64,000 nucleotides of DNA from Macrostomum lignano (lineage: Eukaryota), in assembly GCA_002269645.1 (NCBI GenBank), contig NIVC01003377.1:1-64000 (forward strand), in the 5' to 3' direction. Shown one piece after another: positions 4,464 to 59,050 of the stretch (positions within the stretch are counted from its first letter, which is position 1; the number at the start of each line of letters is the position of its first letter). Both the position numbers and the translations under genes were made by a program. The notes beneath the pieces are model-generated. The model did not search any database. It saw nothing but the letters and a program-made list of their open reading frames with translations, and was not told the DNA's origin.

Positions 4464-8358
<3,895 letters not shown>

Positions 8359-10494
8359 CTATGGAGCCTATTGGGCTATTAAAAAGCAATCCTAAAAGCT
8401 TTGCAGCTTGTAATTGATCAACTTTTTCTACTTAGCCTTTATAAAATATGACTTTCTATCTTCTGGAAGCATGCAAGTAAATTAATTTAAGTTCAAGATA
8501 GATTTGATAATTGTATTTTCAGTTTTGTAGCTTATTATAATGTATATATAAACTATGATTATACATAAAGTTGATATTGCTAAATATTATGAAAAATAAC
8601 TTAAGAGAGCATCTAGAAAGCTCATAGTTTATATAGATAATAAATATGGTAACAAAACAATAACATATAAATCTATTCATATTAGAACCTAAAAAACTAT
8701 GCTTTTTATAATCCTTTAAAAATGATATGCTTTATTTAAGAATATAGAAGCCTATATTGTACTAAAAATAATTTAAAAAATAAAAAGTATCATTTCCCAA
8801 AAGAAACTAGCTAGTATGTAGTAGTAAAACATAAAAACAAACTAGAAGCCAAATTAGGCATTTCAAATCAATTTAGTACCATATATAGTTCATTTATTTT
8901 AACTAAGCTTACATATAATTTAAATGTCTACAGTTTATATCAAAACAAACTAATAGCACTTAAAATTAAATCCTACAAATATAATACTACCACAGACTTT
9001 CGAAGTTACATATCTAAGCTATATAATCTACATTATACTAATGTAAATTGTAAGTTAGCAATTAATATTTATTTTAGACATTATGCAGGTCTACAATATC
9101 TATAAGAAGTAAATGATACTATAGTGTCAGTTTTGCTAGCTTCTTTACATTTTAAACAACAGATTAATAATAAAATAAACAGATTAAAGTCATATATCAG
9201 CATTTATTCTACCCCAAGGGCGGAATATTTACACTTGGGTCGTTCTCAAAGTTTCGACGTAAGCAGTTAAGCAAATTTTTTTTAATCCGCCTTAAATTGA
9301 GGGCTTATTTTTTCATGTGGCTCGACAATACTATTAAAAATAAACGTTTATGATTATAAACAGTCATTTTTATTTAAAATTCTTGAGTAAATGTCAAGAG
9401 TCTGCGCATCTTCGTTTTTTAATTTATTTTTTGGATTATCGCTTTATAGCGTAATACCCATTTTATAGATACAATATTTTTCTCACGTGGTCGTATCAAA
9501 AAGTAAAACTATCAAATATTATTTATATCTTGATTTCTTACAACCTGAAAGCCATTAAAACCTTTGGCTTGTTGAATTGACGTTTTTATTTTGACTTTTC
9601 TAGAAGCGTGACACTGTATGGGATGAAAAAAACTAACTTTCAGTTCATTCGTTCAGCTGATAGAATCAAAAGAGAGGTGTGTTTTCATCTGTTATTAAGA
9701 AAGATGGTCACAATTTACAATATAGTATCAAAATATTCAGTGTCATTTAAAATTGTAAGAATTATGTTAATTAAATCACGAGTTTTTAGTTTTTCAATAG
9801 CACAAAATTAACCTAACAAATACAGATTAATCTGTCTACAATAAAACAAGCAGTACCAGAGTAGTTCTGTTTCAAAGCCTTCATCTGTGGCTTGAAAAAA
9901 AGTACTGCCTCTATGCCCCTAGTAAAGTATTAAAAAATTCTCAGCACATTGTTAGGTTTTTGGAAGGTATTTTTGTACATCTAAAATAAACTTGGCCATT
10001 TAAATGCCCAATCTGTTGATGAAAAACAACAGAATTTTACGCTTTGTACTTAAATTTATACTGATCTAATTTAAACTGGGTGTTGTTAGTTGTTTTTACT
10101 CAAAAGAAGATTTTTAGACTGATTTTTTAATATTTTATAGTACATTTTAAGTAGTCTGAAACAAAAATTAATATGCTAAGAAGCAGGAAAGAATAAAAGA
10201 TGAATAAAAATGATGCCGTGCATTTTTATAGAAATACCATGAGAAAACAGTCTTGCATCTATGTATGAAATGATAGTTATAATTATGAAACTAATTTTCT
10301 AGAGTTTACTAAAATAACATTTCTATGCTTCTTACTTTCTAATTAGATCGATTATGCATGATTAGTGATCTCAATTTTTAGGTAATAGATTCGGCCTTTT
10401 GTTACATACCAACGACAAAAAGAAAATAGAAACATTTTTTAAAATTACTACTGGCAATGGTAAAAATAGTACATCAGAAACGAATAATTATGCC

Positions 10495-10861
10495 CAGGGA
10501 CGTCGCCATGGATTCTATGGTTGAAGGGGGGGGACGAAGCCAAGAATTCAGCATGTACACGACTAAATTTCTGCTGTATATTATTTTCGGAATGTGTTGT
10601 CAACTATCATTTAAGCGCCATAGGCACTCGTTTTAGTGCCTCAGCTGCACCACTTCAGCACTGCTGGCATTCATTTTAGAACCGCTGGCACACATTTTAG
10701 AACCACAGGATCCATTTTCGCGCCGCAGACACTATTTTTGTCGTCCTGAAGCAACATTATTTTTTTCCATAACAGGTCAACGAAGGAATGCATGGTGGGG
10801 GACAAAGCATTTTACTGGGGGCTTGTCCCCCTGCACTGCCCCCCCGGTGGCGACGCTACTG
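10495..10861. mobile_element. hAT-like MITE nested in the Sola2-like element
   Basis: Imperfect TIR CAGGGACGTCGCCA / TGGCGACGCTACTG (11/14). 8-bp flanks ATTATGCC vs ATAACGCC (6/8). G-runs near both ends; no ORF. Confidence 0.65.
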
Positions 10862-10986
10862 ATAACGCCACATCAAGTATTAAAAATTTATCCACATCAG
10901 CTCACTGCTTGAAGCTTAAACGTAGATTTATGTCAATAAGTCTAAGAAGTTAAATCTCAAAACCTATACATTTATCAAATAAATAA

Positions 10987-13302
10987 ATGAATTCCGTTCA
11001 CTTTCAGCTCAAAAGCAACTGCTTCTTTAGTATGCCATCAAAGAAGCAGCGCGCTCGCGAGTCTTATAAAAAATGGGAGAATAAAAAGCGTTCCGCTGAT
11101 CTTGAGGGATTCAAAGAGCAGAATCGATTGAGACAAAAAAAGTTCTATTACAAACAAAAAAGTATCATGGAATCGGACGCAGTAAAAGACCAGAGAAGAC
11201 GTCAGATTAAGCCTAATTCAAGGAATGATACTAAACAGATTAAGAGCACTGCGAATGAGCGATTGAGTCGGTCTGAGGCTGCTAAGCAGCGGGAGATGAG
11301 AAAGAAAAAGGAAGAAATTTCGCGTTTGCTTGAACGGTTGAAGAAGGTGGAAGAAGAAAATAAAAAGCTGAAGCAGCAGAAGCGGCGAAGATCTAAGGCT
11401 GCTGTTTCTAGACAAGGTGCCTCTGACGATTCAGATGCCGCCGTCAAGCATATTGTGGATAGCGTCGTAGCAGTGAAACGAAAGAAGCACATGCAAGGCG
11501 TAGTTCGGCGCATTTGTGAGACTGCTGAGACTCCTGGAGTAAGAAAAGAGGTGCTCCGGCGATTGCACTGTTCCGGGAAAATTTTGAAGCCGCTTCCACC
11601 GCCAAAAGTGAAAAAGTTGCCAATGGCTGTTTCGGATTTTTTGTGTGAGGACCAAAACTCACGGGCGACTGCTGGAAGAAAAGAGACCGTGCTCAGAGGG
11701 TCGGAAAAGAAGCAGAAACGCTATCTTCTTTACGGAATGCAGATTTTGTACGAAAAATTTCTGTCTGAACACCCGACTGTAAAATGTAGCAGGGCTTCAT
11801 TTTACCGTTACAAGCCGCCACATGTGCTTCAACCAAAAGTAGGCAATCGAGAACAGTGCCTGTGCCCACTGTGCACCAACGTCGACCTTTTGGTTGAAGG
11901 AATTTGTAAAGCAAAGCTAATAGATTCAACAGCTGACAAGCATGATCTTCTACGGAAGATTGTTTGCTCAGACGAGTCGTACAACTGTCTGAACAATATA
12001 TGCCAGAAGTGCACCCAGCTTTCTCCTATCAAAGCTGGCGCCGCTGCTAATCAGCCAATTGTTGTGTACGACAAGTGGAAGCGTAGGACTGATGCGAATG
12101 GCATGGAGGTTGTAAAGAAAACGATGAACTGTGAGTTTGCCATAGCAAAACTTTTGAAACATTTGCGCAAATATGGCGCCCACTTCCTGCGCCTCCGACA
12201 TCAATTTCGCGCTATTCGTCAGCTGAAGGACAATCTGGGCGAGCACCACCTGGTGCTACACATTGATTTTAGCGAAGCGTATGGCGCAAAGTACCACCGC
12301 GAGACGCAACCAGCCCATTTTGGAGACCGCGGGCAGGTTACAATTCACCAGGGTGTCGCCTACGGGGTGTGTGAACGGCGAGGTGTGTCATTTGCTTCTC
12401 TGTCGTTGGACCGCAACAAGAAGGCGGAAGCAATTGTTGCACACCTGCTACCTGTACTGAAGCACTTTTTATCCGTCTTAGGTGAAGTTGAGCGAGTCAC
12501 CATCATTTCCGACTCCCCCAGCAGCCAATACCGCAACAGAATGACAATTTTTTTGTTTGATCGACTGTTGCGGCGAATTGGCATCCATCGCTGGCAGTGG
12601 ATCTTCACCGAGGCTGGCCACGGCAAGGGTGCCGCTGACGGTGTGGGAGCGGCCATTAAGCGGCGTTGCGACAACCGGGTGTCTACAGGTGAGCAGAGGC
12701 AGGTGGTCACGGTGCAGGACATGATGGAGGCAATGATGATCGGTGGCAGTAATGAAGAGAAAAAGATTTTGCTTTTCGAGGTTACAACCAGTGACATCGA
12801 GGAGTTTGGAAATGTGCTGCAGATGGTGAACCTGTCTACAATGCCGGGCATTGCCAACTGCCACCACGTCTGCCGAGTTGATGAAAGCGGCATCTTGTAT
12901 CGGGAGCTGGTCTGTCTCTGCACAAAAGCTAATGATTACTGTCGGTGCCACAACGCTAGACTGTGGCAACCGCTGGCTTTGCCACCGATGCCAAGACAGC
13001 AGACAGTGCTTTCGGTGAAAGATGCAGCTGGTGCCGCAAGGTGTTCAACTGGCAAGCGTGTCAGGGGTCAAGAGCGAGGTCGGGGTCATGGTAAGTCGGG
13101 GACTGAGGTCGAGCGCTGCAGTTCTACCATCTGTATTCAGCCTGCAAGTTTGAGAATCCAGTGGATTCAATGCGATGGCTGTGATGCCTGGCATCATTGT
13201 GAATGTGCTGGCTTTCCACCAAAGAGCAACCTGCCACAAAACTATTATTGCTCACCTGATTGCGCCTTCGACCTCACACAGGCTGAGATGAGGGAACTTT
13301 GA
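10987..13302 (+). CDS. Sola2-like DDD transposase with N-terminal basic coiled coil, Cys-rich segment and C-terminal PHD finger (likely start ATG 11032, MPSKK)
   Basis: Uninterrupted 771-codon ORF. Motifs HIDFSEAY, ISDSPSSQYRN and FTEAGHGKGAADGVG supply three candidate catalytic Asp. CLCPLC is present. The C-terminal CSSTIC..WIQCDGCDAWHHCEC..YYCSPDC fits C4HC3 PHD spacing. Confidence 0.88.
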   Translation: MNSVHFQLKSNCFFSMPSKKQRARESYKKWENKKRSADLEGFKEQNRLRQKKFYYKQKSIMESDAVKDQRRRQIKPNSRNDTKQIKSTANERLSRSEAAKQREMRKKKEEISRLLERLKKVEEENKKLKQQKRRRSKAAVSRQGASDDSDAAVKHIVDSVVAVKRKKHMQGVVRRICETAETPGVRKEVLRRLHCSGKILKPLPPPKVKKLPMAVSDFLCEDQNSRATAGRKETVLRGSEKKQKRYLLYGMQILYEKFLSEHPTVKCSRASFYRYKPPHVLQPKVGNREQCLCPLCTNVDLLVEGICKAKLIDSTADKHDLLRKIVCSDESYNCLNNICQKCTQLSPIKAGAAANQPIVVYDKWKRRTDANGMEVVKKTMNCEFAIAKLLKHLRKYGAHFLRLRHQFRAIRQLKDNLGEHHLVLHIDFSEAYGAKYHRETQPAHFGDRGQVTIHQGVAYGVCERRGVSFASLSLDRNKKAEAIVAHLLPVLKHFLSVLGEVERVTIISDSPSSQYRNRMTIFLFDRLLRRIGIHRWQWIFTEAGHGKGAADGVGAAIKRRCDNRVSTGEQRQVVTVQDMMEAMMIGGSNEEKKILLFEVTTSDIEEFGNVLQMVNLSTMPGIANCHHVCRVDESGILYRELVCLCTKANDYCRCHNARLWQPLALPPMPRQQTVLSVKDAAGAARCSTGKRVRGQERGRGHGKSGTEVERCSSTICIQPASLRIQWIQCDGCDAWHHCECAGFPPKSNLPQNYYCSPDCAFDLTQAEMREL

Positions 13303-16300
13303 ACATGAACGAACTCAACTCACATGGGAATCAATTTTTAGTTTTTAATGCTATCAATATTTAGCTTTTTTATTACGAGCAAAGCATCGATCCATGACTT
13401 AGGTTATAGAAAGTTTTCTTTAGGTGGGTTTGAAAGACACCACTTGGTTTTTAATGAAGACACCACACAAAAGTTGAAAACTTTATGCACCACACACTAA
13501 CTATAATTGGAAAGATCTTAATTAATCTCTACCGGAACTTACTCGGTACCGGCACCGAACTGGATAACATGCATGGGCGGGGGTGGAGAAAAACGATCTT
13601 GGAATCATTTTGACAGCAATGCTATGTACATCAAAGATCAGAACAGACAAGGGGTGAAGAAGAGAGAGAGAAATTTTCTTCAACCAGTCTGTAGTCAGTC
13701 AGTTTGTCCTCCAGTCGGGGCAGTACAGAAGCTCAGCGCTTATGGTCTCACAAAAAACTAAGTCTAGTATTGGGTTATAGCGATAGATCCCAGTCAGCCG
13801 GCCATCTGGTGTGACTACAGCTGACCTCTTTAACCCATGGGGATATGCCATTGCAGTAAGGTCAAGGTCCACATGCTAAAGCACGCGGCCCCTTAGTGCT
13901 TTTACAGATCCATGCTAAGGAAAGTCACGGCTACAAAGAAGCACCCAAAGAAACTCTTATCTATCACTTCTATAACAAAAATTTGGGCGTGTAGACATCA
14001 AACAGTTCTAAGACCCTACAGTGCTACATGTACAATTTATAAGTCACCCGAGACGACAGGCTTTACTACGTGAGATGCCCCAAATGCCAAATTCTCACGT
14101 TAAAAAACCTAAAACAATGTAGGAGTCAACACACAATACTAAAAAAATAATTTAGAGCATATAATGAAAATAGCTACTGTAGTCTTTTAAGCATACAGTG
14201 GATCGATTCCTGAATCTCGTGTAGGTCTTTTAAAGGACAGTCATCAAGGCATACAGTGTATTATTTATGCAAAAGTAAACTATATTTTCTGAATTATCTT
14301 CAAAACCTGACTTCAAATCTGAAGTAAAATAAAGCTCATTATATTAGCTCCATATTAAATAAGCTAACATTTTTATGTATTTTTGAAGTTTCTAAATATT
14401 CAATGCTGTTGAAGCTATGCAAAGCCTTCTCAAAATTTGTTTCGAAGTCCTAATAAGTACTGGCAAATCAGTGGTTTGTTTCATATTCTTGTATCAAGGA
14501 ATTGGATTCGAATATGTGCTTCATTTTACAAATGAGATTTTTCCACTGGTGCTTGTTATTTTTTTCTTTTTAAATTTAGCTTATTGAAACTAAATGGTGA
14601 ATGGTTGAACTTCAAAGAAAAACAGTTTTTTAATTATTTTCATACAGAAAAATTGTTCTAATATTACAGTAAATCATTTTGTTATTGTTATTGTATTGTT
14701 ATACCCATTTTAGATTACTTTTATATGCTGTATGTTGTTGCATTATTATCATTGCTTTGATAAATTTCACAGATGCATGTATTTTTTCCAAATTACTCTA
14801 AAACCAAAATAAGGTATGTGATCTTACTTTGCATGCATTTAACCAATCCAACAGCAATTTCAATGAAAGATTAAAGTTAGAATAGAAATACCGATATTTA
14901 CCCTAAACTGCCTTGTTTCTGACTTTCACACTACATGTGCTAGTAAGCTATCAGATAACTTCTAAATTCTAACATCTCTACCTGGTGAGCTTGCAATTTA
15001 TGCGCTCCATGAATATTACATACTTTTAGAAATTGAACAGAGTTCGCATTTTAAAGTTACATCAAAAACAAATTTAAATGAATTTTCTGAAGAAAACGGA
15101 GAAAGAAGTATTCAAAATAATGATGATCTCATTTACATTTTCTGAATTTTTAAGAACTTGAAGACAAACAAGTTTAACAATAACGATGTCCGAAAAGAAC
15201 TTTTTTCCACGAAGTTAAAAACGTGTGGTGTAACTGTTTTTAAATAGTAAAACAAAATCAAATATGACTATTTAAGTGTGTTTATCTTTGTAACTTAATA
15301 AAAAAATAAATAGACAAAATATTACTTTTAGGTGTTTCATATGCATTTTAATTAGATATTGCAGGACAACAACTTTGTCGTCTATACATCCTTACGGTAA
15401 AATAAACAAACACGCTTATTTATTGAATATTCAAGGATTTTGTGGTTTAAAAAACCTATATGGGTTGTGGTGCCACAAATGAAAATTTTAAAGCCAAAAG
15501 AATAATATTTCATGCTTTTTAATTTTTTGTTCATAAATTCAAGCTAAGATTTGAGAACGACCCACTTGCTTTCTTACAAAAAATCAAAATCAAAATCGAT
15601 AAGGAAAGACAGAAATTTGTTGTAAAAAGTTTATAGATAATTTAAGCATATAATACATTTATATTACTTTTTTTATAAAACGACTTTTATACCAGATTAT
15701 TCAACTAGGATTATAAGATTGTTTGTTTAACATATTGTAAAGCGTAAAGCCGGGGCTGAATTTAAATCCACATCTAAATAAACTTTCGTCTCAAAAATAT
15801 CTCAAATATATAGTTCTTACTGGCCTGAGCAAATTTACTACTACTACTTCACGTCGCTGCAATTTACTACAAACGTCTAGTTCCTCTTGTGGCCTCATCG
15901 TACTCATAGACATCATAGTTATGAAATAAATATACATGGGTATATAGGCCTAATGAATCAATAAATACATTGTTGCTACAATAACTACTAGTAGTAACTA
16001 GTGTCATATTTATCATTTTCTTTTTGTCAGATATAGGTGTAACTGTAAGTGGTAAGCCTAGGTTTTTTGCCTAGCTAGCTATAAATAAGCATAAATTTAG
16101 GCCTAAAAGTTTGATTTTGGATTTGAAATTATACTAAATGTTTATAAGTTTGGCATTTATTTAAAAACTTAAATTAATATTAGGCCTAAGATGAGATTTT
16201 CAATATGCCTATTATATTAGTTAGAATTAGGCCTAATAATAGGCTAATAAGGTAGCCTAATATCTTTCCTGTTACAAAATAAAAAGGTTGAACCTGATGC

Positions 16301-16531
16301 TAAGTTGCCAACTGCTTAGAGCAATGGTTAGGCCCTATGCTAACAAAGTTTACTACTCTTAGGCCTAGCTAATGGTTTCTTCTAACTTATATATGCACAA
16401 CCCCCTTGCCTTGATTTACACTGGCCATGCAACTTACTTGTGAAAATTGAAAAAAAACCCTAAAAAAGCACAAAATTAATGCAATTTTGGATAACTGCCA
16501 GGAGTAGGCTTAACTATGATTGTCTTATTAA

Positions 16532-17979
16532 CAGTAGGAATACCAAGCCATTTTTCCGCCCGTCGAACTACCAAGGGAGGGGGAAAAGTTTCCCCCCCCC
16601 CTGACAAATTTTTTTGCTGCGCCGGAACGGAGCAACGCAGACACACAAAATTCAAGAACACGGGCTAACTTTTTGTTGTGCACCTTCTCAAACAAGAATC
16701 AAGTCGCCAGCCCTCTGGACCGTCGAGATATTCGACGATTCTGCCAGAAGGTCGGATTTTTCCCATAAGCGCTAGTGTATTCAGTACACCCCTGTGCGCC
16801 AATCAGCACTGCGCCTCAGTGCAGCCTTGCCAAGTCTCCAAATTTCATCAGCACGTCGACCACATGTGTCTGCATCAGCTCTGACTTCGTTGGTCACTAG
16901 CCTTCACCTAGGCGGAGCTTCTGGACCTTCAACAGGTGGCACCAAGTGACTATAGATACTCTGATACGAATTTCTCGAGTTTCGCTGATCAAGCCTCGAC
17001 AGTGGGCATACCTCAACTGCTAGGTATCCTCAGCTAGTCTCTCGAGCCTTCCATCATCACCCCGACGCCGTCGGCACCTTCAACGGATTACACCAGGTGA
17101 CTATGAACACCCTGATGCAAATTTCTCTAGTTTCGCTGATCAAGCCTTGCCAATGGGCAAGCCTCAACCGCGGAACATCTTCAGCTAGTCTCTCAAGCAT
17201 TCAGTCATCACCCCGACGCCGTCGGCACCTTCAACAGATGACACCAGGCGACTATGAACACCCTGATGCAAATTTCTCTAGTTTCGCTGATCAAGCCTCG
17301 ACAGTGAGCAAGCCTCAACTTCTGGACACCCTCAGCTAATCTCTCAAGCATTCAGTCATCACTCGGACGCCGTCGGCACCTTCAACAGATGACACCAGGC
17401 GACTATGAACACCCTGATGCGAACTTCTCGAGTTTCACCGATCAAGCCTCGACAGTAGGCAAGCCTCAACTGCCGGACACCCTCAGCTAGTCTCTCAAGC
17501 ATTCCGTCATCATCCCGACTTATTGATGAGGTATGCCCACTGTCGAGGCTTGATCAGCGAAACTCGAGAAATTCGTATCAGAGTGTCCATAGTCACTTGG
17601 TGCCACCTGTTGAAGGTCCAGAAGCTCCGCCTGGGTGAAGGCTAGTGACCAACGAAGTCAGAGCTGATGCAGACACATGTGGTCGACGTGCGTATGAAAT
17701 TTGGAGACTTGGCAAGGCTGCACTGAGGCGCAGTGCTGATTGGCGCACAGGGGTGTACTGAATACACTAGCGCTTATGGGAAAAATCCGACCTTCTGGCA
17801 GAATCGTCGAATATCTCGACGGTCCGGAGGGCTGGCGACTTGATTCTTGTTTGAGAAGGTGCGCAACAAAAAGTTAGCCCGTGTTCTTGAATTTTGTGTG
17901 TCTGCGTTGCTCCGTTCCGGCGCAGCAAAAAAATTTGTCAGGGGGGGGAAACTTTCCCCCCCCCTTGGTAGTTCTACTG
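16532..17979. mobile_element. Non-autonomous foldback DNA element with ~455-bp inverted arms and internal 151-bp tandem repeats, flanked by TTAA
   Basis: 16560-17015 is the near-perfect reverse complement of 17527-17979. TTAA at 16528-16531 and 17980-17983. Termini CAGTAGGAATACCAAG vs (rc) CAGTAGAACTACCAAG. Internal unit recurs at 16981, 17132, 17283 and 17434. Confidence 0.85.
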
Positions 17980-18865
17980 TTAAGGGTACCAGTCATTTCG
18001 GTGACAAATAGTCATTTTGGTGACAAATAGTCATTTTAATTTTTGGTCACAAGTTGCTATTGTGATAGACACACTTCATTTTCAATGAAAAATCAAAGAT
18101 TTCATGAGTATTGTCATTTTAGTGATAAGAGACATTTCATAATATTTGGTTGTATTTATTTTGTTAAGATTTATATTTCCATTATATAATTTATTTAATT
18201 CATTATTAAGGCTAAATGCCTCATCATGCAATTAATGCTATATTTATATTATTTTAGGTGGGCATTTTTATGACTATCACTAGACCATCATAATTTATAG
18301 TGACCAGATCAGCTAGGTTGGCCAGAAATTGTGCATGTATATTCTAGCTTATATGGTGACAACTAATACAAAAAATATCTATGGTAGTCTTCTAATAAGT
18401 CAATAGTTATAATATAAGTCAAGTGCAATTAAGTTCAAGTTGTAGTTATAAAATATACAAATAGCATTTAATATCTAAATTTAAAAATTTTAATATTTTC
18501 ATCAATTCAATTTAAATATTTTGTTTTCTTATTTTATAAGCATAATTCATAAGGCTTTATTCCCCTTTTATAATCAATTAATGTTTTTAAATGCCCAATG
18601 CATTAATATACATAGTTATATAACTATGGGGTAGTTGCCCCTCCCTTATATAGAAACCTGAAAAAACAGAAAGGAACCAAGCAACTTTTTGCAAAAACAA
18701 AGCCACCTCTACCTTGCCCCTTTGGTTTTTACCCTCTAGAACCTCATTGCGCATGTATGTGTTTTGAGGTGAAAACATGTTTTTTGGCAAGACATATTTT
18801 TGGGTATTTTATCGCAGTCCCGAGTTGCTCAACTCTGTCCCGCAGCAGAGCTCGCCCGCTGCGCC

Positions 18866-21762
<2,897 letters not shown>

Positions 21763-50108: not shown

Positions 50109-53100
50109 ACTACTAAGGGATTCCGTAAGGCTTGATTTTGGAGGTGGGGTGGGTGTCAACCCTCCTCGCCTCTCATTGGCTGGCGCCCCGATCACTAGGT
50201 GATCGATACCCGTATCGATATCGGCGACTCGAACCCGCGACCCTCCCCAGCCGCAGGCGCACCTACCGATATTAGATCCCAATAAATCAATCAGATCCCA
50301 AATCAATCAGATCCCAAGCGCACCCTCCCGAGCCGCAGGCGCCCATGCAGCAGGCGCCCATGCCGCAGGCACCCCGAGTGTACACTCTCCCGATATGTGT
50401 GTACACCGATATGTAGTCATCGATACGGGCCTCTTCCCCTCTCTCACCTACATCTCAACTAGCGAAATCGAACCCAGGTCGCGCCCATACTAGGACACTA
50501 CACGGTTGTGGGGTATAGGGAGCGAGAAGTTTCAACCCTAACGCTGACGCAGCCCTGTACAGTGAGAGTGTACGGGCAGAGAGGGGTGGGGCGGACAGAG
50601 AACCAGCCACTAGGTTGTTATACTGTTGAAGCATAGGGAGCGAGAAGTTTTAACCCCGATGCTGACGCAGCCCTGTACACTGAGCGTGTACGGGCAGAGG
50701 GTGGGTGGAAAGAGATGTGAATAACACAGCCTGCTGCAGGAGCCGGATAGAGAGGCGCATGCTAGGACAGAGAGGTAGTGTGAGTCACACACACCCCACA
50801 GAGAAAGCCATACAGAGGATAGAGAGCTCCCTCCCCAGTTGCAGGGGACAGAGAGGCAGGCAGGGTATGCAGGGGCATGCGAACCGTCAAGGGGCCACGC
50901 GAGGATAGAGTGGAGGAGCAGAGATGTGTTTGGACAGAGAGCCAGCCACGTGTGCGTAGTGTGAGGGAACAGAAACATATGGAGCAGGAGGGAGATAGGA
51001 AGCAAACGCGCAGGGTAAGGGAGCCATGCAGCAGGGAGCAGTGTACAGTGAGACACGGGCAGGGGTGGAGCCGTGCGTGGACAGAGCTGAACGGCACGGT
51101 CAGCTGCAGGAATAGGATGATAGAGAGGCGCGGAGGGGGACAGAGAGCAGTGTGCAGGGTAGGCAGCCACGCAGGCTGGGGAACAGAGAGGCGCGTGTCA
51201 GCCAGTTACAGCCCGGGACAGAGAAGTATGAAGGGGGGCCTGGGACAGAGAAGTATGAAGGGGGGCCTGGGACAGAGTTGCGAGCAAGGCACAGAGAGAG
51301 GTAGGGTCCGGTAGCTATGTATAGGCAGGGACCCACGCGAGGGCAGGACAGGGCATGCAAGGCATGCAAATTACATGCAAGGGCAGTGAGGTGTGCGCGG
51401 AGGGAGACAGAGAGCAGTGTGTAGGGGTAGGTAACAGCAAACTTTAGTAGCGGCGCGTGCGGGGACGGAGAAACCAGTCAGAGCATACAGAGACGTTACA
51501 GAGAGGTACACAAGCAGAGACCAAAGCGAGCAGAGCACATGTGTAGGGACAGAGACGTGAGGGAGAATCGACCAAAACACGCTATGTATTTTCAAAAGTT
51601 GGTTTTAGTGCAACATGTTTAATAGTGGGTAGTATAATAGTATGTACATAGTAGGTATAATAGTAGTAATAATAGTAAGCATATTAGCCCAAAAGGTAGA
51701 CTAAAACAGGCTAAACTGTGTGTACGCATCCTCATCACCCCACAAGCCCCCTCTCCCGCCAGACTCACTCTACCAAACCCTCCTGTATTGCTGCATGAAG
51801 GAAAATATAGTGTAAAAATACAGATCTTAACCGTCAGACCGCTGAAATCAGGGCACACTAGAGGGGTTTCGGGGTCTGCATGCTCTATGTAAGCTGCTTG
51901 AGGAGGTTCCAAGGGCGTTGTGAGGGTTTCCATTATGTTTTGAAAAAAACTAGAGGCTTAAATACAACGTTTTATTCAAAAGTAGGTTATTTTAATGAAA
52001 TAGCTGACACAATCATTGTCGAGAGTAGAAATTTTTATAAGAAACCAGGCATTTTAGCAAAAATAAACCTTCAAACCACATAAAATTGAATAAAAAGCAG
52101 ACATTTTCAATTATAAACCGCAAGTATTTTAATAGAAAAGTAAGCAAACAAGGCACAAAACCAGCAAATTTTACCTTTTTATTTTAATGTTACTGATAAG
52201 GTAGAGAGTAGAAACTTGTGAGCTGTACGGAGTTAGAAAGTATTAACCATTATGTATCGTATGAATTATTAGTTCAGTACCAGCCATTGGTCAAGCGAGC
52301 ATTTATGAAGTTATTACGAGTGATGAAGGGATAGAGAGCTATATACAGGAAGACAGTATCCTTCTAAACCACCACGAACAGATTGCTAATAGAGATAAGC
52401 TTTGTCTGTGTGCAGTATGAGTAAGCGAAGGCGGGGCAAATACTTTTCCACATGCCGGACAGAACAGTATTGTGCTAGGATTTCTCTCGAAATCGCGGTA
52501 CGTTACTAGTTTTTATCACACCATCCAGATGCGTCAACTAGTCAGCAGTAGTCATTTATATGTTATTAGAACTTACAAACCCAGGTCAAGTAAATATTAC
52601 AAAGAGTATATTACGTACACACGCCAACTCCGAATACCAAGCCATACTAGTCTACTTGCAGTGCTCCTGGAGGGAAGGGACGGCGGGGTGTACATCCGGC
52701 AGGGTGGGCGTCCAGCGAGTGTACATCTGACAGGATGGGTGTTCAGCAAGTGTACATCTGACAGGGTGGGCGTTCAGCAAGTGTACCTTCAGCGTCGAGT
52801 AGGTGTACACCCGTCAGTGGGAACTCAGCCCCTCCCACCAATGTCGTGTGCACGCGGTTAGTCAGTATAGTGGTGGGGTAGACGGTGCAGGAAGGAAACC
52901 CAGATGCTGACGCTGCCCTGTACAGCGAGCAACCAGCCCTCCTGTAGCAGGAGGGGGACAGAGAGTGCGTGGAGGCAGTAGGAGATAGAGGACGCTACCC
53001 GGCATGTCGCAGCACGCGGCGCGGGACAGAGAGGCAGTGTGTAAGTCACCCCCACAGGGAGAGCTGCCCTGGCAGGAGGCGCGGGACAGAGAGGCGGTGA

Positions 53101-56100
53101 ATCACACCCCACGGAGAGAGCCGTACAGCGAGCTTCCCCACCCGAGTCCGGTAAATATTACAGAGTATTACGTGCACACGCCAGCCCTGAATACCAAGCC
53201 ATACTAGTCTACCTGCAGTGCTCCCAGAGGGAAGGGATGGTCAGGAGTTACACACCAAGAATGCATTCATACAAAGAGTACACAACTCGAGCCCAGACAC
53301 CAAGTCACAGTCTACTTACAGTAGAGATGGTAGATTAATAGCAAGATTATATTACAATTAGACCTCCCTAGCACATGAGGAGTGAAATTCAATAATAATT
53401 GAATTCAATAATAATACAACATTTAGACGTAGTAATTTAATTACAAAATACCACTAACACTGAGCCAACGAATTGTAGGTTACAAAGGAGTTGCACTCAT
53501 ATGGAAAGCCAGTATAATGCAGGTGTATATTATTAAAACATAGACAAAAACGATGCAGACGTATATACACACTATTGATTTTGTACATGTACATTTCGGC
53601 ATATTACCACACATCGCAGGCACATATTATATATCGGGGGATAGGTTAAAATACACACATCGTAGATGTAGAAGCAGACACAATGCAGGAAAATTATGAT
53701 ACGAGTGTACATATTAGTGCGTAAAAGTATCATATTATGACACCCTGTAGCACATATTGACATAATGCAGGGGAAAATATTGACAGAAATAGTACACAAT
53801 TGTAGAGGTAACAACCCGCCAACTAGTAAGGACATCCAGCACTTGTTCAGGTTTTTATTATTTCGAGACGAGTGTCATGCCCCCGCAAGAGATCTTATCA
53901 GAAATTTGTTGAACTCCACTGCAACTCTCCCAGAGCCTCCAAATGTGAGTTTTTAACCCAGGGTCGAGTACAAAGGACCCGCCCACTCTTAACCCCAAGG
54001 GGTGATCGTAGCGGAGACCAAGTACAGTGCGGACGGAGAGGGGTAACAGAAAGCGCTGCATCAGACCGCAGGGCTGCATTCCTCCCCGAGGTAGGCGCGT
54101 CAGCTCCCACTCCTCATTTAACCATCAAGTAAACTAAAGAAGTCAAGCAGAAAGCCTTACAATCACCCGCAACCAGCACAAGTAAGAGTACTTTCCACTA
54201 GAGAGCCATAGTGCAAGATTCGCGAGCCAAGTTGAAGAAGCACACCAAATTACACTAAAGACATATGTATTAAAAAGCATACCGGCACCTCTACAAAAAC
54301 ACAGTATGTACCGATTAAAGTTGCTTTTGGTGCAGTGTATTTAATAAAAGCAGGTACCTAACACAAAAGTAGGCATCAATGCAGTGCACGGGCTAAACTG
54401 TATTTACAAACGCAGGGCAACGAACTACACACAATGTAGCGCATAGACATAATTGTACGCATAAATGTACGCAATTTCCGGTATATAGGACCAAATGTAC
54501 ACAATGTACACAAACACACACACACACACACACACTCAGGCGTATTCACAGCAAGAGCTTCCTGCCGATGGCGCCATCGCCTGCGGCGATCGGTGCTGCA
54601 GGATGCGCTGCAGGATGCGCCTGAGTGTGTGTGTGTGTGTGTGTGTTTGTGTACATTGTGTACATTTGGTCCTATATACCGGAAATTGCGTACATTTATG
54701 CGTACAATTATGTCTATGCGCTACATTGTGTGTAGTTCGTTGCCCTGCGTTTGTAAATACAGTTTAGCCCGTGCACTGCATTGATGCCTACTTTTGTGTT
54801 AGGTACCTGCTTTTATTAAATACACTGCACCAAAAGCAACTTTAATCGGTACATACTGTGTTTTTGTAGAGGTGCCGGTATGCTTTTTAATACATATGTC
54901 TTTAGTGTAATTTGGTGTGCTTCTTCAACTTGGCTCGCGAATCTTGCACTATGGCTCTCTAGTGGAAAGTACTCTTACTTGTGCTGGTTGCGGGTGATTG
55001 TAAGGCTTTCTGCTTGACTTCTTTAGTTTACTTGATGGTTAAATGAGGAGTGGGAGCTGACGCGCCTACCTCGGGGAGGAATGCAGCCCTGCGGTCTGAT
55101 GCAGCGCTTTCTGTTACCCCTCTCCGTCCGCACTGTACTTGGTCTCCGCTACGATCACCCCTTGGGGTTAAGAGTGGGCGGGTCCTTTGTACTCGACCCT
55201 GGGTTAAAAACTCACATTTGGAGGCTCTGGGAGAGTTGCAGTGGAGTTCAACAAATTTCTGATAAGATCTCTTGCGGGGCATGACACTCGTCTCGAAATA
55301 ATAAAAACCTGAACAAGTGCTGGATGTCCTTACTAGTTGGCGGGTTGTTACCTCTACAATTGTGTACTATTTCTGTCAATATTTTCCCCTGCATTATGTC
55401 AATATGTGCTACAGGGTGTCATAATATGATACTTTTACGCACTAATATGTACACTCGTATCATAATTTTCCTGCATTGTGTCTGCTTCTACATCTACGAT
55501 GTGTGTATTTTAACCTATCCCCGATATATAATATGTGCCTGCGATGTGTGGTAATATGCCGAAATGTACATGTACAAAATCAATAGTGTGTATATACGTC
55601 TGCATCGTTTTTGTCTATGTTTTAATAATATACACCTGCATTATACTGGCTTTCCATATGAGTGGCAACTCCTTTGTAACCTACAATTCGTTGGCTCAGT
55701 GTTAGTGGTATTTTGTAATTAAATTACTACGTCTAAATGTTGTATTATTATTGAATTCAATTATTATTGAATTTCACTCCTCATGTGCTAGGGAGGTCTA
55801 ATTGTAATATAATCTTGCTATTAATCTACCATCTCTACTGTAAGTAGACTGTGACTTGGTGTCTGGGCTCGAGTTGTGTACTCTTTGTATGAATGCATTC
55901 TTGGTGTGTAACTCCTGACCATCCCTTCCCTCTGGGAGCACTGCAGGTAGACTAGTATGGCTTGGTATTCAGGGCTGGCGTGTGCACGTAATACTCTGTA
56001 ATATTTACCGGACTCGGGTGGGGAAGCTCGCTGTACGGCTCTCTCCGTGGGGTGTGATTCACCGCCTCTCTGTCCCGCGCCTCCTGCCAGGGCAGCTCTC

Positions 56101-59050
56101 CCTGTGGGGGTGACTTACACACTGCCTCTCTGTCCCGCGCCGCGTGCTGCGACATGCCGGGTAGCGTCCTCTATCTCCTACTGCCTCCACGCACTCTCTG
56201 TCCCCCTCCTGCTACAGGAGGGCTGGTTGCTCGCTGTACAGGGCAGCGTCAGCATCTGGGTTTCCTTCCTGCACCGTCTACCCCACCACTATACTGACTA
56301 ACCGCATGCACACGACATTGGTGGGAGGGGCTGAGTTCCCACTGACGGGTGTACACCTACTCGACGCTGAAGGTACACTTGCTGAACGCCCACCCTGTCA
56401 GATGTACACTTGCTGAACACCCATCCTGTCAGATGTACACTCGCTGGACGCCCACCCTGCCGGATGTACACCCCGCCGTCCCTTCCCTCCAGGAGCACTG
56501 CAAGTAGACTAGTATGGCTTGGTATTCGGAGTTGGCGTGTGTACGTAATATACTCTTTGTAATATTTACTTGACCTGGGTTTGTAAGTTCTAATAACATA
56601 TAAATGACTACTGCTGACTAGTTGACGCATCTGGATGGTGTGATAAAAACTAGTAACGTACCGCGATTTCGAGAGAAATCCTAGCACAATACTGTTCTGT
56701 CCGGCATGTGGAAAAGTATTTGCCCCGCCTTCGCTTACTCATACTGCACACAGACAAAGCTTATCTCTATTAGCAATCTGTTCGTGGTGGTTTAGAAGGA
56801 TACTGTCTTCCTGTATATAGCTCTCTATCCCTTCATCACTCGTAATAACTTCATAAATGCTCGCTTGACCAATGGCTGGTACTGAACTAATAATTCATAC
56901 GATACATAATGGTTAATACTTTCTAACTCCGTACAGCTCACAAGTTTCTACTCTCTACCTTATCAGTAACATTAAAATAAAAAGGTAAAATTTGCTGGTT
57001 TTGTGCCTTGTTTGCTTACTTTTCTATTAAAATACTTGCGGTTTATAATTGAAAATGTCTGCTTTTTATTCAATTTTATGTGGTTTGAAGGTTTATTTTT
57101 GCTAAAATGCCTGGTTTCTTATAAAAATTTCTACTCTCGACAATGATTGTGTCAGCTATTTCATTAAAATAACCTACTTTTGAATAAAACGTTGTATTTA
57201 AGCCTCTAGTTTTTTTCAAAACATAATGGAAACCCTCACAACGCCCTTGGAACCTCCTCAAGCAGCTTACATAGAGCATGCAGACCCCGAAACCCCTCTA
57301 GTGTGCCCTGATTTCAGCGGTCTGACGGTTAAGATCTGTATTTTTACACTATATTTTCCTTCATGCAGCAATACAGGAGGGTTTGGTAGAGTGAGTCTGG
57401 CGGGAGAGGGGGCTTGTGGGGTGATGAGGATGCGTACACACAGTTTAGCCTGTTTTAGTCTACCTTTTGGGCTAATATGCTTACTATTATTACTACTATT
57501 ATACCTACTATGTACATACTATTATACTACCCACTATTAAACATGTTGCACTAAAACCAACTTTTGAAAATACATAGCGTGTTTTGGTCGATTCTCCCTC
57601 ACGTCTCTGTCCCTACACATGTGCTCTGCTCGCTTTGGTCTCTGCTTGTGTACCTCTCTGTAACGTCTCTGTATGCTCTGACTGGTTTCTCCGTCCCCGC
57701 ACGCGCCGCTACTAAAGTTTGCTGTTACCTACCCCTACACACTGCTCTCTGTCTCCCTCCGCGCACACCTCACTGCCCTTGCATGTAATTTGCATGCCTT
57801 GCATGCCCTGTCCTGCCCTCGCGTGGGTCCCTGCCTATACATAGCTACCGGACCCTACCTCTCTCTGTGCCTTGCTCGCAACTCTGTCCCAGGCCCCCCT
57901 TCATACTTCTCTGTCCCAGGCCCCCCTTCATACTTCTCTGTCCCGGGCTGTAACTGGCTGACACGCGCCTCTCTGTTCCCCAGCCTGCGTGGCTGCCTAC
58001 CCTGCACACTGCTCTCTGTCCCCCTCCGCGCCTCTCTATCATCCTATTCCTGCAGCTGACCGTGCCGTTCAGCTCTGTCCACGCACGGCTCCACCCCTGC
58101 CCGTGTCTCACTGTACACTGCTCCCTGCTGCATGGCTCCCTTACCCTGCGCGTTTGCTTCCTATCTCCCTCCTGCTCCATATGTTTCTGTTCCCTCACAC
58201 TACGCACACGTGGCTGGCTCTCTGTCCAAACACATCTCTGCTCCTCCACTCTATCCTCGCGTGGCCCCTTGACGGTTCGCATGCCCCTGCATACCCTGCC
58301 TGCCTCTCTGTCCCCTGCAACTGGGGAGGGAGCTCTCTATCCTCTGTATGGCTTTCTCTGTGGGGTGTGTGTGACTCACACTACCTCTCTGTCCTAGCAT
58401 GCGCCTCTCTATCCGGCTCCTGCAGCAGGCTGTGTTATTCACATCTCTTTCCACCCACCCTCTGCCCGTACACGCTCAGTGTACAGGGCTGCGTCAGCAT
58501 CGGGGTTAAAACTTCTCGCTCCCTATGCTTCAACAGTATAACAACCTAGTGGCTGGTTCTCTGTCCGCCCCACCCCTCTCTGCCCGTACACTCTCACTGT
58601 ACAGGGCTGCGTCAGCGTTAGGGTTGAAACTTCTCGCTCCCTATACCCCACAACCGTGTAGTGTCCTAGTATGGGCGCGACCTGGGTTCGATTTCGCTAG
58701 TTGAGATGTAGGTGAGAGAGGGGAAGAGGCCCGTATCGATGACTACATATCGGTGTACACACATATCGGGAGAGTGTACACTCGGGGTGCCTGCGGCATG
58801 GGCGCCTGCTGCATGGGCGCCTGCGGCTCGGGAGGGTGCGCTTGGGATCTGATTGATTTGGGATCTGATTGATTTATTGGGATCTAATATCGGTAGGTGC
58901 GCCTGCGGCTGGGGAGGGTCGCGGGTTCGAGTCGCCGATATCGATACGGGTATCGATCACCTAGTGATCGGGGCGCCAGCCAATGAGAGGCGAGGAGGGT
59001 TGACACCCACCCCACCTCCAAAATCAAGCCTTACGGAATCCCTTAGTAGT
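50109..59050. mobile_element. Giant (~8.9 kb) palindromic foldback element: arms 50109-54542 and 54618-59050, 75-bp spacer
   Basis: Arms are reverse complements throughout, and the ORF track is mirrored. Termini ACTACTAAGG..CCTTAGTAGT. CTCCTC lies directly outside both ends. No ORF longer than 190 aa lies within it. The palindrome itself is certain; its mobile-element nature is inferred. Confidence 0.8.

Follow-up and report, generated by a model that had tools for sequence, protein, structure and literature searches.

A probable autonomous Sola2 DNA transposon between PCMTD1 and POLR2C in the flatworm Macrostomum lignano

What occupies the interval between two divergent genes, PCMTD1 on the minus strand and POLR2C on the plus strand, in a 64,000-nucleotide stretch of DNA from Macrostomum lignano (contig NIVC01003377.1, positions 1 to 64,000; hereafter the window), and could it still move? 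An initial annotation, made from the letters of the sequence, had proposed a structurally complete and possibly active Sola2-like transposon. Upon comparing its ends, its gene and its relatives with known elements, we consider positions 9237-15563 to be an autonomous class II cut-and-paste Sola2 DNA transposon of 6327 bp that has inserted in this genome, with a probability of about 0.9. The element is of an ordinary kind: Sola2 is already known, and relatives are found in thousands.

Ends, target-site duplication and gene

The element begins with GGGTCGTTCTCAAA at 9237-9250 and ends with the exact reverse complement at 15550-15563 (14 of 14 positions), and outside this inverted repeat a direct repeat, ACTT, flanks it on both sides at 9233-9236 and 15564-15567. 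The inverted repeat ends after 14 nt, with only sporadic matching between the two ends deeper inward, and no further occurrence of the 14-mer was found in the window when up to two mismatches were allowed. Upon randomising 5 kb on each side of the open reading frame (ORF) 1000 times, we obtained on average only 0.14 pairs of perfect 14-nt inverted repeats per shuffle, and in none of the 1000 shuffles did an inverted pair carry a matching 4-bp flank, which excludes chance as the source of the combined ends and duplication. The predicted uninterrupted site would read ...TTTAC-ACTT-GCTTTC... (ATATTTAC-ACTT-GCTTTCTTAC). The perfect 14-bp terminal inverted repeats (TIRs) and the perfect ACTT target-site duplication of the initial annotation were thus recovered at the coordinates it had claimed, and the transposase ORF that it had described as uninterrupted runs for 771 codons without a stop.

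This ORF, the longest (10987-13302, plus strand, 771 amino acids), is single and open throughout. Because homologues begin at the position of M16, we take this codon, at 11032, as the probable start. Inside the element, no other ORF of at least 80 amino acids was found outside the transposase frame, and a search for subterminal binding-site repeats returned none, only one 10-mer being present three times and GCATACAGTG not being enriched. The parts of the element are as follows.

9233-9236, no strand: left target-site duplication ACTT, identical to 15564-15567
9237-9250, plus: 5' TIR GGGTCGTTCTCAAA, perfect over 14 of 14 positions against the other end; the terminus also occurs in the related loci L003 and L004 (see below)
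9251-11031, plus: 5' non-coding part, 33% G+C, no ORF of at least 80 amino acids
11032-13302, plus: transposase gene, single exon, 756 amino acids from the probable start M16, stop codon included
11857-12012, plus: cysteine-rich region upstream of the catalytic core, amino acids 291-342, a putative zinc-binding DNA-binding module
12244-12684, plus: RNase H-like catalytic core, amino acids 420-566, aligned by hhalign to the Sola2-1_HM core
12265-12267, 12511-12513 and 12637-12639, plus: candidate acidic triad D427, D509 and D551
13117-13263, plus: C-terminal PHD-like Cys4-His-Cys3 finger, amino acids 711-759, a sub-threshold Pfam PHD match
13303-15549, plus: 3' non-coding part, 33% G+C, only ORFs of up to 62 amino acids on both strands
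15550-15563, minus: 3' TIR, reading TTTGAGAACGACCC on the plus strand
15564-15567, no strand: right target-site duplication ACTT, identical to the left copy

The transposase and its assignment to Sola2

Since pairwise BLASTP against Dictyostelid Sola2 proteins gave only marginal, collinear matches (E 0.002), comparison at the level of profiles was needed to place the transposase. We built a query profile from the ORF and 21 homologues and compared it by hhalign with reference RNase H cores of Sola1, Sola2 and Sola3 (Repbase sequences in Majorek et al. 2014, supplementary file 5) and with the Dictyostelid Sola2 references Sola2_DFa-2 and Sola2_PPa-1 (Bao & Jurka 2013, PMC3627910, supplementary file 3). 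The profile matched the Sola2-1_HM core over all 125 columns (99.4%, E 3.4e-21) and the two Dictyostelid transposases over 391 columns, with three blocks in register (96.8%, E 3.1e-10), the motifs DFSEN, SDGP and HGKGxxDG pairing with DFKEN, SDGA and HGKSxxD of the Dictyostelid proteins. The match to the Sola1-1_AP core was weak (68.9%, E 4.5e-5) and lay over the second half of the core, and the comparison with the Sola3-1_HM core gave no detectable similarity (0.9%, E 0.064). No Pfam transposase family of any superfamily matched at E<=1, which rules out every superfamily represented by a Pfam model (hAT, MULE, PIF/Harbinger, Tc1/mariner, piggyBac, P, CACTA, Transib and Ginger/rve). Hence, the Sola2-like identity put forward in the initial annotation holds in these comparisons, with core scores for Sola2 far above those for Sola1 and Sola3 and with no other superfamily claiming the protein through Pfam.

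Several superfamilies were considered individually and rejected. For piggyBac and Kolobok, the duplications are ACTT and varied tetramers rather than TTAA, and there is no DDE_Tnp_1_7 Pfam match; for Ginger, no rve match was obtained at E<=1, and the termini are GGG...CCC, not TGT...ACA. Neither a Pfam domain nor the duplication length of 4 bp speaks for hAT, MULE, PIF-Harbinger, Tc1-mariner, P, Transib or CACTA, whose duplications measure 8, 9-10, 3, 2, 8, 5 and 3 bp, respectively.

Among known Sola elements, Sola1 and Sola3 belong to the same superfamily in Repbase and likewise make 4-bp duplications, and Sola1 differs in its motifs, DLEK and SDNCGGQNRN standing against DFSE and SDSPSSQYRN in the window transposase. 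Sola2 was reportedly defined by sequence in 2009 by Bao, Jurka, Kapitonov and Jurka, with ends that are said to begin 5'-GRG and a DDD transposase, a description with which the GGG start of the window element and D427, D509 and D551 accord. The Hydra element Sola2-1_HM (Repbase) shares with the window element a core that is homologous over the 125 columns, the motifs DF[AS]ENY, [ST]DG..QY[KR]N and W.F....HG, 4-bp duplications and short inverted ends; it differs in its host, the window element residing in a flatworm, and in sequence, the window core being only ~18% identical to it. The Dictyostelid Sola2 elements DFa-2 and PPa-1 have inverted ends of 12-13 bp (to 22 bp in PPa families) that start GAG, and 4-bp duplications (Bao & Jurka 2013, PMC3627910). 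Their transposase homology with the window element includes a cysteine motif upstream of the core, whereas the elements themselves are 13-15 kb long with a Fanzor1 (TnpB-like) gene, compared to 6.3 kb and a single gene in the window element, and their duplications are AT-only (AWWT) rather than ACTT.

The transposase opens with a basic, helical N-terminal part, which is followed by a cysteine-rich module and the RNase H-fold core, and it closes with a PHD-like finger. Relatives are abundant: among 1.84 billion cluster representatives searched, 4942 were found at E<=1e-3 and 482 at E<=1e-30, the named homologues including hagfish and beetle proteins. The alignment of the ORF with its 21 homologues contains three almost invariant blocks (HIDFSENY, SDGPxTQYRNK and WNFxEAGHGKGAADGVGG), and every invariant family residue is kept in the window transposase. 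Of 118 columns conserved in the subfamily, only 4 differ between it and its six closest relatives, through changes that are conservative or lie in a low-complexity stretch. In the cysteine-rich region, C291, C293, C327, C334, C339 and C342 are at least 90% conserved in the family, and the motif RSTFY..P...NR.D.CP.C aligns with the Dictyostelid Sola2 transposases. D427 is invariant, D509 and D551 are at least 90% conserved, and the three align with D326, D413 and D456 of DFa-2. As E542, conserved in the animal family, is another residue in the Hydra and Dictyostelid sequences, we favour D551 as the candidate third catalytic acidic residue. The C-terminal finger matches Pfam PHD at amino acids 722-756 (E 0.0039; 17.6 bits, under the cut-off of 24), and P0027, a relative with 53% identity, preserves its motif; confirmed only within its own subfamily, the finger sets the window transposase apart from the Sola2 reference. 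That the cysteine-rich module might bind zinc and DNA, and the finger chromatin, are guesses on our part.

In an AlphaFold2 model of the protein (mean predicted local distance difference test score 71.9), amino acids 210-660 mostly exceed 80 and the PHD-like finger is of low confidence. The model places D427 at the end of strand 421-428, D509 just past strand 503-508, and D551 at the opening of helix 549-566; the core is modelled with confidence, and its predicted layout matches the usual topology of RNase H-fold transposases. A Foldseek search against PDB returned only RNase H-like nucleases, all weakly (herpesvirus terminase nuclease, Argonaute PIWI, P element and Mos1; best match E 1e-3, template modelling score 0.33 on the target). 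The P element and Mos1 mariner, cut-and-paste transposases of solved structure, and these nucleases have the same predicted core fold, while a PDB sequence search found no chain similar to the transposase; no Sola transposase structure came up in that search or in Foldseek.

If it works as other transposases with an RNase H fold do, the element would move as follows. The transposase would bind the GGGTCGTTCTCAAA termini and pair the two ends, a metal-ion site formed by D427, D509 and D551 would cut the element out, and the excised ends would be joined to a target cut with a 4-bp stagger, repair of which would leave the ACTT duplication. The anatomy, the homology, and the termini and duplication length that relatives have in common are observed; the chemistry, the DNA-binding roles, a recent insertion and present-day activity are inferred.

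Related elements and the weighing of alternatives

The termini and the length of the duplication are common to relatives of the element. Relatives with 30-46% protein identity also start with GGGT. One of these, a 46%-identical protein (P0024), is encoded on a Joint Genome Institute metagenome contig (L003) within an element of 5163 bp, which carries GGGTCGTTCGCAAATCTTGGG, perfectly inverted at both ends over 23 nt, has the terminus GGGTCGTTCGCAAA, and is flanked by TACA and TGCA, matching at 3 of 4 positions. A 43%-identical relative (L004) lies in NCBI assembly GCA_002269645.1, which we take to be M. lignano, and represents a sister family, the only related one found there; its right end is GGGTCGTTCTCAAAATCAGG and its left end CAGTCGTTCTCAAAATCAGG, 6255 bp apart, with the terminus GGGTCGTTCTCAAA as in the window element. 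Scanning metagenome contigs with the subfamily alignment gave 69 loci of 30-35% relatives, and seeking GGG...CCC inverted ends around the transposase match then yielded about fifteen elements of 4.4-6.0 kb, all beginning GGGT(C/G/T). Perfect 4-bp duplications were present in six of these distant relatives (GTAT, CTAG, TGCT, AATA, ATAT and ATAT). Other copies thus do carry such ends and 4-bp duplications, in keeping with what the initial annotation had anticipated of them.

The contigs of L001, L005 and L006 were too short to span element ends, and L002 was excluded from the count, as it showed a ~95-nt imperfect inverted repeat starting near GAGCA and no clear duplication. Five loci of one family (L009-L012 and L016) have identical 27-nt ends and mismatched flanks. 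Among these contigs, L010 and L016 have a right flank in common, and the right flank of L012 corresponds to the left flank of L016, while the opposite flanks differ. Such a pattern suggests that the assembler joined flanks from different insertions of a multicopy element, in which case the absence of duplications in such contigs is no evidence against the 4-bp rule.

Some further features of the relatives were recorded. At L005 (763-3009), a 58%-identical relative is broken into three overlapping ORFs in different frames, a decayed copy unlike the intact one in the window. In the outermost ~1 kb at either end, L007, L009-L013, L016, L017 and L020 carry many copies of a 13-16-nt motif (e.g., GTAACAGAGATTAC) that face in opposite directions and are likely transposase-binding sites; other families carry other motifs (GTCATTACCATCAG and GTGACGGTGTTGAC). 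The 5' end of the L003 element (442-480) resembles window 15525-15563, the last 38 nt of the element's 3' part, at 87.5% identity over 40 nt. This likeness is inverted, even with both transposase genes drawn in one direction, and the gene may have been flipped relative to the ends in one lineage, L003 or the window element. Finally, ~200 nt of the 5' non-coding part (10492-10697) are 70% identical to L004 7159-7362, which lies 1 kb outside the left end of the L004 element; the piece could be a separate small nested repeat, or L004 could be more complex than drawn.

A number of observations weigh against reading the window element as an autonomous Sola2 transposon. L004 lacks a duplication and its 5' terminus is changed, and several metagenome copies have non-matching flanks. 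Only one copy is visible, with no other fragment of the element in the window, so that mobility of the family in this genome is putative. The choice of D551 over E542 draws on conservation rather than geometry, and the N of the DFSEN motif, present in 20 of the 21 other family members, is replaced here by A431. Could the Sola2 label itself be wrong, with the transposase coming instead from piggyBac, Kolobok, Ginger or Academ, whose duplications also measure 4 bp, or from an unnamed superfamily? The marginal BLASTP matches to Dictyostelid Sola2 proteins leave room for this, but the profile match to the Repbase Sola2 core is decisive and sets the protein apart from Sola1 and Sola3, Pfam gave no match to piggyBac, rve, hAT, MULE, PIF, Tc1, P or Transib, and the duplications of the family vary in sequence instead of being TTAA; we regard a wrong label as extremely unlikely. 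A different concern is that the ORF might be a domesticated host gene, or a fragment of a larger composite, with the 14-nt repeats not being true boundaries. A public gene model, UniParc UPI0007A2BD0E (P0001; 998 amino acids, window 7303-19320), does splice the ORF with flanking exons, and the ~200-nt piece of 5' non-coding DNA that matches outside the L004 element points the same way. This model, however, assembles an antisense PCMTD1 exon, the transposase ORF minus an internal spliced-out piece, sequence of a foldback repeat, and POLR2C; because it runs antisense to the PCMTD1 exon and crosses the foldback repeat, it is a chimeric model, an annotation artefact caused by the insertion. Moreover, two independent relatives of comparable length (5163 and 6255 bp) have the same terminal sequence at their borders, and the perfect 4-bp duplication at the ends was never reproduced by shuffling, making a host gene or composite very unlikely.

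Accepting a Sola2 transposon, there is roughly an even chance, as judged from the sequence, that this copy can still move. Its perfect ends and duplication, its open 2.3-kb ORF and its conserved protein would fit activity, and the 18 informative end bases are too few to date the insertion. It is close to a toss-up whether the insertion, exactly as described, is instead dead or silenced and intact because it is recent, be it through the N431A change near the first catalytic aspartate, through host small-RNA silencing, or through missing internal sites. The replacement of a residue kept by nearly all family members would fit such a loss, as would the absence from the window element of the 13-16-nt motif arrays that distant relatives carry on both sides; likewise, neither a second copy nor a near-identical protein fragment was found in the collections searched, and an exact-product look-up with the ORF from M1 and from M16 put no identical gene product on record. 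Conversely, P0024 likewise carries A at the position of A431, and the ends of its element are perfectly inverted over 23 nt; the window transposase retains the candidate acidic triad and every invariant residue of the family, and its ORF has stayed open despite a 33% G+C context in which stops arise easily. A more ambitious version, in which the copy is currently mobile and its PHD-like finger reads promoter-type chromatin, seems improbable to us; if true, such guided targeting would explain why the Sola2 element landed in a ~4-kb interval between two divergent housekeeping promoters.

Genomic neighbourhood and significance

On its left, the element faces the N-terminal exon of PCMTD1 on the minus strand, the ATG of which (8346-8344) lies 887 bp from the left duplication, as the ~890 bp given in the initial annotation had indicated. 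The following exon of PCMTD1 (minus-strand ORF 7258-8196) shares ~50% identity with animal PCMTD1/PCMTD2, and no M. lignano protein was among the PCMTD search results. The transposase gene is directed away from PCMTD1 and towards POLR2C, 3.3 kb further, the first exon of which, at ~18860, is 100% identical to M. lignano A0A1I8J1Z1 outside a gap in that gene model, which identifies this flatworm as the host; an exact-product look-up for M. lignano RPB3 gave no match. Judged by position alone, an effect of the insertion on PCMTD1 expression is plausible.

The window holds other repeats as well. Between the transposon and POLR2C, a foldback-like element of ~1.4 kb (16562-17977) has arms of 422 nt that are 98% complementary (16594-17015 and 17527-17948, reaching 16562 and 17977). 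In its interior it holds three tandem units of 151 bp. At 50109-59050 lies a near-perfect palindrome of ~8.9 kb, with arm pieces of 3386, 247 and 665 nt that are 100% complementary and a 69-nt centre (54546-54614). This is an inverted duplication of very recent origin or else an artefact of long-read assembly. Long minisatellite arrays (6133-7313 and 19300-21300), within or beside PCMTD1 and POLR2C, give rise, on both strands and in several frames, to spurious ORFs hundreds of codons long (SDLL..., ADHSANHS...).

For the annotation of this genome, the finding is of minor value in that UPI0007A2BD0E merits splitting. For the family, it may matter more: our literature search found no report of a transposition assay of Sola2, and a search aimed at Sola elements in Macrostomum turned up no relevant paper. 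With its perfect ends and duplication and its conserved single-exon transposase gene, the window copy, residing in a laboratory flatworm, offers a practical starting point for the chemistry and structure of Sola2. It is well suited to a first functional and structural study of these elements and is a possible basis for a gene-transfer tool. If the copy were mobile and its finger did read promoter-type chromatin, Sola2 would gain its first experimentally active member, equipped with a targeting module of its own and residing in an animal for which transgenesis is already established.

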